Shown piece by piece: positions 24,057 through 40,417 of a stretch of 64,000 nt of DNA. The stretch lies in NCBI GenBank assembly GCA_002104945.1, contig MCFH01000039.1, positions 62,001-126,000 on the forward strand. The letters are read 5' to 3'. Within the stretch, counting starts at the first letter, position 1, and every line of letters begins with the position of its first letter. The notes beneath the pieces were generated by a model. That model was not told where the DNA came from, made no database searches, and saw only the letters and a program-made list of their open reading frames with translations. The translations under genes and the position numbers were made by a program. This stretch comes from Piromyces finnis finn (taxonomy: Eukaryota; Fungi; Neocallimastigomycota).

Positions 24057-27000
24057 ATGGAAGTATCCAGTCATAAATTAACAAAAAAATTTAGTAGATC
24101 AGAACATCATTTTGAAAATGAAGAAGAAAATAATAAAAATTTTTTACTTTCATGTAAAAGTGGAAATCAATCTTTAATGAAAAGATATTTATCGCATATC
24201 ACGAGTATTAATGTAAAGGAAAAGGAAACAGGAAATACAGCACTTCATTTAGCATGCATTAATGGTCATGAAAAATTGGCTCAGTTACTCATTAAAAATG
24301 GTATTGATATTGATGAAAAAAATAATGAAGGGTTTGTTGCTCTTTACTATGCCATCTATAATGGATTAGTGAGTACGGTAAAAGTATTATTAAATCATGA
24401 ATCGTACATGGAATGTCTCGATAAATACGGAAATTCTATTTTACATATTGCATGTGAATTGGGATACATTGACATTGTAAAACAATTATTGGAAAAAAAG
24501 GTACTAAATAATCATAAAAATAATAATTTTAAAACTCCTTTTCACATTGCTTGTCAAAAGGGGTTTATTCATATTATCGAACTTATGTTACAACGTCATG
24601 ATATATTGATTGACGATATTGATAGGGATGGGAAAACAGCGTTAATTTTAGTCTGTGAAAATAATCATTTTGATATTGTAAAACTGTTACTAAAAAGTAA
24701 TTGTAATATATATATAAGAGATAATGCAGGGAAATCGGCCATTTATTATGCTTGTCAAGTCAATAATACGGATATGATCAAGGCATTAATTCATGCAAAT
24801 GCTGATATTATGCAATATGATAATGATACGGTATATCCATTACATTTAGCATGTATGAATGGAAATCTAGAAATTGTAAAAATGTTTGTGGAATTGTTAA
24901 ATGCCGATATGGAATGTAGAGATAACCATGGTTATACGCCACTCTATGCTGCTTATATTAATCAACAAAGTAGTGTGATAAAATATCTTATTTCAAAAGG
25001 ATGTAATGTCGATTCTCAAAATAATGATGGGGTGGCCATTCTTCATTATTGTTGTATGATTGATTGTTTAGATTCTTTAAAGGCAAATAATAATGATGAT
25101 GTCGTCATTGCAGCGACTAAAAAACGTCGAAAAGAAAGGATGACCTCTTTTAGAAGTTATGCTTTAGAGGATACCCTTTACTGTTCTATCGAAGAATTAT
25201 CTAATTTTGTAAAGACTTCGTCTGTCCCGAGTGTAGCTTCAAACGATACCCCTTCTAAAAAAAGGGGTACTAATACTACTGCCAATAATAAAAAGAATAT
25301 GGAAAGATCATCATCATCATCTTCTTCAGGTTCATTAAAAAGAGAAAAAAGTATGGAACAGAAAAAATCATTAAAAAGTGCAACACTTCGTTCCCGAATG
25401 AGTTTAAAACATCTTCTTTCAAAATCATCAGGAAAAATTGGAAATAAAGAGGAGACATCAAAAATAGTTTTGGATGAATTGAAAAGGAATAATGAAAATA
25501 ATTTAAAAAATCATAAAAAATCAAAAAGTGAATACCTTCCAAATGAAAATATTAATAAAAGAAGAAATAATAAGGAAAAAGGGGAGGAGGACGAGGAAGA
25601 TGAAGGATTGAAAAAAGGAAAATCATTTTATTTTAGTTTTAATCGTAAAAGTAAAAATGAAGTGAATAATACTTCCTTGAAAGAAAAAAATAAATTGTCT
25701 ATAAAGAAGAAAGAGAATGATAAAAATGAAATAACAAATACCATTTCTGACCCAAAGGAAAATGAAAAGAAAAATAGGACTAAAAGTTTGTCAAACATTA
25801 AAAAAAATAAAATCAACGATTCTCAGTCAAGTATTTTACTTCATGGGACAAGAAGTCTTTTAGGTAGCCTTGATTCTTTTCTTTCAACAACTAGTAGTAC
25901 CAACAATGTTGCTACCATCAATAATAAAAATTTATATTTTAGTAGTGAAATGGAATATATAGAAATTTTATTGGATAATAATGCAAATATTAATATTCGA
26001 GACAATGATGGGAATACACCTTTAATGATTGCTTGTGCTTTTCGAAGAATAGAACAAATCAATTTATTATTAAAACGTGGGGCTAAAACAGATGTTTTAA
26101 ATAATGAAGGGATTACCCCATTGGATTTTCTTTGTTTTGACAAAGAATTGGGAATACGAAAAGAAGGAATCAATATATATAATTCAAGTCGGTATGAAAA
26201 TTATGTTCCATATCTATTACAAAAGGATACCTCTTTATCAAACGCAAGTAATAAAAATTATAAATATACACCACTTCACCTGGCATGTTATAATAATAAT
26301 TTAGAAATGATTAAATTCCTATTGGAAAAAGGTCAAAGTATTAATGCAACGGATTGTAATTTAAATACCTCCTTTCATATATTATGTAAAAAGGGATATA
26401 GTAATATACTAAAAGAATTATTTGAAATGAAACTAAATATTAATGTTAATGCTCAAAATGTCATTGGTAAAACAGGAATACATTATGCCTGTCAAAATCA
26501 AGATGTCATCACCATTAAATTATTATTGGAACATCATGTTAATTTACAGCTAGCGGATAGTCATGGTAATACACCATTGCACGTTGCTTGCTCCATTAAT
26601 AATTATGAAGTTATTGATTTACTTCTTAATCATATCATATCTGAATTTAGTAATAATTCCCTTCAAGTATCATCCACTGCCACCTCCACCGAAACTACAA
26701 AAAAAAGTGAACCCATCACCAATGAAATGGAAATTATTAATTGTTTTAACGAAAAGGATGAAACTCCGATTTTTTTAGCATTAAAGAATGATCATATAAA
26801 AATTGTTAATAAATTACTTCACCTTCATAATATCAATATCTCCTTTAGGGATAAAGAAAATGAAAATACCTTGTTACATTTAGCTTGTGAAAAAGAAATT
26901 GTTAGTACAGCTCAAAATTTACTATGGCTTTCCATGGACCCCAACGTTCAAAATAAAGAGGGAAATACACCACTTCATATTGCATGTCAAAAAAGTAGTT

Positions 27001-30022: not shown

Positions 30023-30468
30023 GATCTAAAATAAAATATTATATATATGTATCATTATCATTTTTTTTATTTTTAACATTATTCATAGTTTTTTTTTTTT
30101 TTATTTTTACTTTTTTTAAAAAAGTCTTTTTTTTTTTTTGCTTTTGTTTTTTATTATTAAAAGTTTTATTAAAAAAATATAAAAATTACTATTACTATCG
30201 TATGTCTTTTATATCCTTTTTTTATTTAATTATACCCCCAAACTTGCTTTAAATGTAGAATACCTCAAAGTACATAATTAATTTGTAAATTATATTTAAA
30301 ATTTATATTAAATTTTTTATTATCTAATTTCAATAATAATAATAATAAAAAAACCAATAAATAATAATTATTTTTATTTTTATTATTATTATTTTTTTTT
30401 TATTATTAAATATATATAATTTAAAAAAAAAAAAAAGTTTAAAAGTATTAAAATATAATAAAATAAAT

Positions 30469-38544: not shown

Positions 38545-39905
38545 ATGGAAATTCAAGGTGAAGACGATTATTTTGTTAAAAATACTCCACCAAAAAATAT
38601 CGAGGAAGTAGAAAAAAAAACTAAAGAATTTTTAAATTTCCAAATTGAAAAGGATAGACGTGTTGTTCTTGTTACTGTATGTTATTCATTAACAAATAAA
38701 AATGACTTGAAATTAAAACATATAAAATTTTTAAATAAAACCAAAAAAAATTAAATATATTTTATTCATTGTTTATTATTTCTAATAGTCTGGTGGAACA
38801 ACAGTACCACTTGAAAACCAAACTGTCAGATTTGTTGATAATTTTAGTGCAGGAACTAGAGGTTCTGCTTCAGTTGAATATCCTTTTTATATTAAAAATG
38901 AAATTTTAAAAATGTTCATTTTTCAATTCATTTGAGTATTTTAATATTTCAAAGAATAAAAAATATTATTTCTTAATTTATTTTATTTTATTTTTTTTTT
39001 TTAAAATTCTTTCTTTTTTCTTTCTAAATATATATATTATATATATATTATATATACATAACACAACATATACATATTTTATTCAATATAATAAACATAT
39101 TTCATAGAACAAGGATATGCAGTTATATTTTTATATAGACAACATAGTTTAAGACCATATAGTAGACATTATTCCCACTCTAAAAATTGTTTCTTAGATA
39201 TGCTCGACATTGACAATGACAATATTATTGGTACCAATTATACTTTATTAAAATTTTTATTTAAATTAAATTGACAATAATATAAAAAATAAAAAAAAAA
39301 AAAACAATAAATTAATTCTTTTTTTTTTTTACTGCTTTATATGTTATATCTTTAATATTTAGTTAATAATAAATATAATAGTTTTATGAAGATAATTTTA
39401 GAAAAATATAAAAAGGTATATTTTAAAATGCATTTCTAAAAATTCGAAATGCATTAAAATCTAATTTGAAATCTAAAAATTAATATTATTTTTTAACAAA
39501 AACAAAAACAAAAAAAAAAAAAAAAAAAAAAAAAGTTTTATCCTTATTTAAAATTATATTATTATTATTTTTTTTGAAAAACAATAATATAATGATAATA
39601 ATAAAAGGCAAAAGCTGAAAATCTTTTACTTGAAATTGATTTCTTTACTGTTAAAGATTATTTCTTCTATTTAAATAAAATCACTAAAATTCTTTCTACC
39701 ATAGAAGAAAAGGCAATGTATTATTTAGCAGCTGCTGTCAGTGACTTTTTCATTCCACCAGAAAGAATGGTATTGTATTTTTTTTTTTTTTATTTTTAAG
39801 AAATATTTTAATTTATAATTAGTTCATTACATAAATAATATAGTTCTAAAATTTAAAAAATAATACCTAATCATTAACAAATACTATTCGTATTATTATT
39901 ATTAT

Positions 39906-39936
<31 letters not shown>

Positions 39937-40417
39937 TTGGTTTAAAATATAATAATTTATAGGTTGAACACAAGATTCAATCAAGAGCTGGTGGTCTTAA
40001 CCTTTCATTAGATCAAGTACCAAAGTTCTTAAAACCATTGGTTAGTGAATGGGCCCCAAAAGGTTTAATTGTTTCATTCAAGGTAACTCTATTTACTATA
40101 TATAATTATTATGAAATAAAAGAAAAATAATAATTTTTATTTACTTTACCTATACTTGTTTTTATATATAGTTAGAAACTGATCCTGATTTATTAATATC
40201 CAAGGCTAGACAAGCTCTTGATAGATATGGCCATCAAATTGTTATTGGAAATATGTTATTAACAAGAAAAAGAGTTGTTCATTTCATTACCAAAGATGCC
40301 GAAAGAAAAATTGAAATGAGTGATGAAGAATTAAAGAATGGAATGGAAATTGAAACAAAAATCATATCCGAATTAAAAATTAAACATGATAACTGGATTG
40401 AACAATCAAAGAATTAA
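38545..40417 (+). CDS. CAB2: Phosphopantothenate-cysteine ligase (PPCS/Cab2), 7 exons, 311 aa; intron 2 is AT-AC
   Basis: Exons 38545-38676, 38789-38877, 39097-39230, 39363-39415, 39608-39769, 39963-40082, 40172-40417. Motifs [56 protein letters not shown]. Confidence 0.92.
38878..39096 (+). other. U12-type (minor spliceosome) AT-AC intron, 219 nt
   Basis: Begins ATATCCTTT (38878-38886), the U12 5' splice-site consensus; ends ..TAAAC (AC at 39095-96). Removal restores [23 protein letters not shown]. Confidence 0.85.

Follow-up and report, generated by a model that had tools for sequence, protein, structure and literature searches.

A U12-type AT-AC intron in the single-copy PPCS gene of the gut fungus Piromyces finnis, with a candidate branch motif far from the 3' splice site

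Larue and Roy (2023, PMC10639083) have already described minor introns and minor-spliceosome snRNAs in P. finnis and N. californiae, and their study of the Neocallimastigomycetes covers the same species group, the same kind of intron and the same snRNA set as those treated here. Its main text does not name PPCS and does not discuss branch-site distance, and a search of the literature turned up no paper in which PPCS is named among minor-intron genes. The U12 AT-AC introns of animals and plants (for example the P120/NOP2 intron F class) provide a second comparison. The PPCS intron shares with them the RTATCCTTT signature, AT-AC ends, a non-zero phase, the lack of a polypyrimidine tract by the 3' end, deep conservation of position and four minor snRNAs. 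It differs from them in that its only good branch motif lies at 119 nt, not 10-20 nt, from the 3' splice site, in the presence of a CC-variant U6atac, and in being 89% A+T. The PPCS intron is one more example of a known intron kind, in a lineage whose minor splicing is already published; new here are its conservation between fungi and animals, its single-copy host gene, and a six-point series of branch distances at one orthologous site.

We define "the window" as the 64,000-nt stretch of P. finnis contig MCFH01000039.1 that was analysed. Transcript contigs and the sequence itself place on its + strand a seven-exon gene for phosphopantothenate-cysteine ligase (PPCS/CAB2; Table 1). The coding lengths of the exons, 132 + 89 + 134 + 53 + 162 + 120 + 243 nt, make up 311 codons, which is the size of enzyme that the earlier note had predicted from AT..AC splicing, and the five remaining introns of the gene are all GT-AG. 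A metatranscriptome cDNA ORF of 311 aa from a close relative (L009:85-1017) served as a full-length proxy for gene identity. Compared exon by exon, this ORF is 87-100% identical to the window gene; it matches the Pfam DFP family (PF04127) at 68 bits and the structures of yeast Cab2 (6AI8, E = 9e-78) and human PPCS (1P9O, E = 8e-73). Pfam searches with single window exons, which are too short, gave no matches.

The gene is present in a single copy. A search of the whole genome (56,455,805 bases in 232 contigs, about 17% GC) with the L009 proxy returned six matches, and all six are exons of the window gene. Since no other exons were found genome-wide, there is no intron-less back-up copy of PPCS, and CoA synthesis in this organism therefore depends on the joining of 38877 to 39097. 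To this extent the description of an essential gene that relies on the splice, made in the earlier note, holds. The base composition of the surroundings is extreme; GC content varies between 13 and 33% in 2-kb bins of the window and is about 17% around the intron.

Table 1. Features of the PPCS/CAB2 locus in the window (positions count from the first letter of the window)
Feature	Position	Strand	Description and support
PPCS exon 1	38545..38676	+	44 codons from ATG; translation, transcript contigs; 91% identical to L009 cDNA ORF
Intron 1	38677..38788	+	ordinary GT-AG, 112 nt; joint 38676->38789 in four runs
PPCS exon 2	38789..38877	+	89 nt; last two bases GA open a Glu codon; translation, contigs, L009
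U12-type AT-AC intron	38878..39096	+	219 nt, phase 2, 11% GC; four runs, six lineages
U12-type 5' splice site ATATCCTTT	38878..38886	+	perfect U12 consensus (/RTATCCTT)
Distal branch-like motif TTCTTAAT	38970..38977	+	only good motif in intron; 119 nt to 3' splice site
Proximal branch candidate TTATTCAAT	39079..39087	+	candidate of the earlier note; degenerate; A residues 10-11 nt from 3' end
3' splice site AC	39095..39096	+	sixth AC downstream of distal motif
PPCS exon 3	39097..39230	+	translation, contigs, L009 match
Intron 3	39231..39362	+	GT-AG; joint in runs X1 and X3
PPCS exon 4	39363..39415	+	contigs, L009 match
Intron 4	39416..39607	+	GT-AG; 7 letters unplaced beside masked repeat, boundary taken from sequence
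PPCS exon 5	39608..39769	+	contigs, L009 match
Intron 5	39770..39962	+	GT-AG; sequence and contigs
PPCS exon 6	39963..40082	+	contigs, L009 match
Intron 6	40083..40171	+	GT-AG; joint in four runs
PPCS exon 7 including stop codon	40172..40417	+	sequence, contigs, L009 match

The junction is directly observed. Exon 2 ends GTT GA and is followed by ATATCCTTT, the tail of the intron reads ATAAAC, and exon 3 opens A TAT TTC ATA GAA CAA GGA TAT, as the earlier note had described. In transcript contigs from all four runs, which come from three studies, 38877 is joined to 39097 and the 219 nt with AT..AC ends are skipped. The joint has a 4-nt register ambiguity, ATAT following both sides; the AT..AC register was chosen because no other gives canonical ends, and in this register the ends of the orthologous introns are likewise canonical, whether AT-AC or GT-AG. 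Unspliced read-through would meet a stop after 22 codons. The L009 ORF is continuous across the junction (GSASAEYFIEQGY), as are eight further gut-fungus proteins of 293-314 aa. The nearest GT-AG options fail as previously noted: TCA/gt (slashes mark splice boundaries) is out of frame and AGA G/gt removes nine residues.

The runs are transcript-like, holding 31-38% of the gene's sampled words, which is near its exon share; their RNA nature is presumed, and their assembled contigs speak to the main junction and not to minor isoforms or lariats. It is accordingly conceivable that the 219 nt are no intron at all and are a strain-specific insertion or an assembly artefact, the contigs deriving from DNA that lacks the insert. 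We consider this extremely improbable. The same contigs lack the other PPCS introns as well, so that all six are missing at canonical boundaries, while the exons match without differences. The early stop on read-through argues against an artefact too, as does Neocallimastix, where an equivalent intron is present in three assemblies and the protein is also encoded by intron-less cDNA contigs. At 39378-39392, in exon 4, some contigs of X1 and X2 end or run into unrelated sequence, and the joint between exons 3 and 4 is present in two of the four runs; these breaks may represent alternative isoforms or chimeric contigs.

The 5' splice site motif would carry little weight by its occurrence alone. 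RTATCCTTT occurs three times in the window, with 3.2 matches expected by chance, and neither of the other two copies lies at an exon end (that at 30211 is intergenic and that at 26222 is antisense to coding sequence). The case therefore rests on the exact position of the motif at the end of an exon, on the spliced transcripts and on the orthologous introns. Looser scans for 5' splice sites and branch sites revealed no obvious second U12 intron in the window.

AT-AC ends are not in themselves diagnostic, since U2-dependent AT-AC introns exist (PMC1557818), and removal of the PPCS intron by the major spliceosome could be argued from the degenerate proximal branch region and from the U-rich runs within the intron. 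The 5' splice site, however, is the full U12 consensus ATATCCTTT and not the U2-like ATAAGT type, RTATCCTTT is kept in six lineages, canonical U12 branch motifs are found in four of the six, and all four minor snRNAs have matches in the genome. We judge the U2-type reading very unlikely, and conclude with high confidence that 38878-39096 is a genuine U12-type AT-AC intron, in phase 2, within the Glu codon of the conserved SA-E/Y-F of single-copy PPCS/CAB2.

The snRNA genes were sought in the genome with Rfam models, the cut-offs being 53 bits for U12, 33 for U6atac, 39 for U11 and 53 for U4atac. U12 (66.6 bits) and U6atac (52.1 bits; L002:1501-1649, + strand) score above their cut-offs, and the branch-pairing box of U12, GUAAGGA, is intact. 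The candidates for U11 (38.2 bits) and U4atac (49.2 bits) fall just under theirs. The central stem-loop and Sm site of the U11 candidate are near-identical to the consensus, and the U4atac candidate and the major U4 (89.9 bits) are separate; the major U6 is likewise represented separately, by two copies. Over 11 nt the U4atac 5' end and the stem II strand of U6atac are exactly complementary, with both strands changed relative to the human pair. Pairing that stays exact when both partners have changed is a good indication that U4atac and U6atac are real genes. From these matches the genome appears to encode U11, U12, U4atac and U6atac. Some 550 nt away from the U11 candidate is a SNORD14-like C/D box snoRNA (52 bits, cut-off 64; L003:2162-2325, - strand).

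Two domains characteristic of U11/U12-particle proteins were matched in the genome, one a ubiquitin-like domain of the SNRNP25 type (35 bits) and the other a CHHC finger of the U11-48K type (27.9 bits); PDCD7 (U11/U12-59K) had no match, and had none in the control genomes either. The presence of a minor spliceosome in the lineage, which the earlier note had deduced from the intron, is upheld by all four snRNAs and by the two domains, in agreement with the published report (PMC10639083).

Two of the snRNAs depart from the familiar forms. Opposite the CCUUU of the 5' splice site, the U6atac box has GCCGA in place of AAGGA, and a genome-wide search for a second U6atac copy with a canonical AAGGA box found none. 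Pairing with the 5' splice site is weak as a consequence, and this counts against the U12 reading. The 5' end of the U11 candidate (L003:1497-1512, + strand) is AAAAGAAAAGUU, unlike the usual U11 5' end, AAAAAGGGC; as its sequence stands, it could base-pair with C6 of the 5' splice site and with the run of U after it, though through fewer G-C pairs. A U6atac with GCCGA corresponds to the known "CC variant", which a 2008 paper (PMC2396436) reported from several protists, lower animals and a moss.

To survey orthologues, genomic PPCS loci of fungi, animals and metagenomes were collected by homologue searches and their exons were mapped. Five other lineages carry a U12-type intron at the same codon and in the same phase (GA/R of Glu, SAE/YF; Table 2), so that the position of the Piromyces intron is shared by fungi and animals. 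The introns of Rhizophagus irregularis, Basidiobolus meristosporus, Haliotis rufescens and Centruroides vittatus have in common with that of Piromyces the codon, the phase, RTATCCTTT and one TCCTTRAY-like motif. They differ from it in keeping that motif 10-18 nt from the 3' end, against 119 nt here, and the two animal introns belong to the GT-AG subtype, their 5' splice sites having the common form GTATCCTTT.

Table 2. U12-type introns orthologous to the PPCS intron of Piromyces
Lineage	Subtype	Length (nt)	5' splice site	Branch motif	Distance to 3' splice site (nt)	Remarks
Neocallimastix	AT-AC	208	ATATCCTTT	TCCTTAAT	70	identical intron in three assemblies
Rhizophagus irregularis	AT-AC	76	ATATCCTTT	TCTTTAAC	18	
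Basidiobolus meristosporus	AT-AC	71	ATATCCTTT	TCCTTGAC	12	
Haliotis rufescens (abalone)	GT-AG	2639	GTATCCTTTG	TCCTTGAC	10	
Centruroides vittatus (scorpion)	GT-AG	180	GTATCCTTTTT	TTCTTAAT	10	same octamer as distal motif of the window

No intron was found at this site in Rhizopus, Phycomyces, Batrachochytrium, Powellomyces, Paraphysoderma, Thamnocephalis or four metagenome loci. One metagenome locus (L011:1376-1437), ascomycete-like to judge by its intron, carries a GT-AG intron of the ordinary kind at a nearby but different position, four codons upstream of that of the minor intron. Since orthologous U12-type introns occur in both fungi and animals, the simplest reading of the comparison is that the PPCS minor intron was already present in the common ancestor of fungi and animals, if not earlier, and that it was afterwards lost many times and changed its subtype.

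The expectation of the earlier note that standard predictors would mis-annotate such introns is borne out in one case and not in the other. In the public Rhizophagus irregularis assembly GCA_001593145.1 (L022:809-930), model P0014 mishandles the orthologous AT-AC intron; the predicted protein is without the conserved SAGTRGATSAE and has in its place 15 intron-derived residues, IEVFALSLTKNFNNT. The Neocallimastix models, by contrast, are correct.

The position of the branch site is less certain than the identity of the intron. The usual place of TCCTTRAY is about 10-26 nt upstream of the 3' splice site. For U12 branch sites the optimum is 11-13 nt (PMC3584512). Within 10-26 nt of the 3' splice site of the PPCS intron there is no canonical branch motif. 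One TCCTTRAY-like motif is nevertheless present near or upstream of the 3' end in each of the six orthologous introns (Haliotis has a second one, far upstream), and in Piromyces this is the distal TTCTTAAT. The earlier note had proposed an AT-drifted branch site near the 3' end; a degenerate candidate is indeed present at 10-11 nt, but TTCTTAAT at 119 nt is the better motif and has a Neocallimastix counterpart.

A motif of the branch class is present by chance in 4-5% of 200-nt stretches of the low-GC DNA of the window, and a perfect TCCTTAAY in 0.3-0.5% of such stretches. The probability of the distal motif being present by chance is accordingly about 0.05 in Piromyces and about 0.005 in Neocallimastix. 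Beyond their ends the introns of the two genera are unalignable in pairwise comparison, and MAFFT even misplaced the 3' end. It is unlikely, judging from these frequencies, that branch motifs would be found by chance in both of two otherwise unalignable gut-fungus introns.

The alternative for the same U12-type intron is that branching occurs at the proximal TTATTCAAT (at 39085/39086), the distal motif being a relic or a chance match. The A residues of the proximal candidate, 10-11 nt from the 3' end, are close to the 11-13 nt optimum (PMC3584512). Neocallimastix has a proximal counterpart in the A/T-only TAATTAAT, which is followed by the same 9 nt to the 3' end as TTATTCAAT is here. A proximal branch would also account for the use of the last AC in preference to the five earlier ones. 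The calculated U12 duplex is no weaker at the proximal site (-6.3 kcal/mol) than at the distal one (-5.7 kcal/mol), a difference that does not discriminate in RNA as rich in A and U as this.

Against a proximal branch, TTATTCAAT is a poor match to TCCTTAAC, the positions opposite the GG of U12 being A or T, and AT-only words like it are very common in the DNA of the window. When the pairing is worked by hand, its best duplex, that at -6.3 kcal/mol, is without a bulged A and is no better than those at other AT-rich sites. All six orthologous introns have exactly one proper motif near or upstream of the 3' end, and the distal motifs, improbable by chance, survive in the two gut-fungus introns that are otherwise unalignable. 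We hold branching at TTATTCAAT to be possible, with somewhat less than an even chance, and lean, on motif and comparison, towards the distal TTCTTAAT as what is probably still the U12 binding site.

A distal branch would have consequences for the choice of the 3' splice site. Between the distal motif and the AC in use there are five other ACs, at 39056-39073, and all are skipped, so that a simple rule of "first AC after the branch" fails here if the branch is distal. The spacer is low-complexity A/T, made up in Piromyces of a run of T, repeats of TA and a short stretch in which C occurs; that of Neocallimastix is without any C or G. A fold that would shorten the distance from branch to 3' splice site was sought, and no significant structure was found in Piromyces (z = -0.8) or in Neocallimastix (z = +0.3). 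In the gut fungi, a branch motif that ancestrally stood at the canonical spacing may have become separated from the 3' end by the growth of AT-rich filler. The Piromyces sequence at 39068-39081 has ATATAC followed by ATATTT, exactly the context of the Neocallimastix 3' splice site (ATATAC/ATATTTC), and this lies 23 nt before the 3' splice site in use. The arrangement suggests that the Piromyces 3' splice site was displaced by an insertion or duplication of 23 nt. Splicing at the older AC would shift the reading frame.

With the distal or the proximal site as its branch, removal of the PPCS intron would depend on the minor spliceosome. U11 would first recognise the ATATCCTTT 5' splice site, and U12, with its GUAAGGA box intact, would pair with the branch-site motif. 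The U4atac/U6atac.U5 complex would then displace U11, and cutting at AT..AC would join GA to A and restore the frame.

The known range of minor splicing is unchanged by the PPCS intron. What the finding adds is that an essential, single-copy gene of CoA biosynthesis, in a gut fungus used in biotechnology, would be tied to the minor spliceosome, that PPCS joins the minor introns conserved between fungi and animals, and that a public Rhizophagus gene model is shown to be in error. The distances of 10, 10, 12, 18, 70 and 119 nt at one orthologous site form a natural series in which the strictness of the U12 distance rule can be tested. The odds seem to us evenly balanced that the gut-fungus minor spliceosome works with a branch 70-120 nt away from the 3' splice site, or roughly tenfold the optimal 11-13 nt. 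If it does, the U12 distance rule would be relaxed in gut fungi, and neither distance nor a "first AC" rule would decide which 3' AC is chosen.
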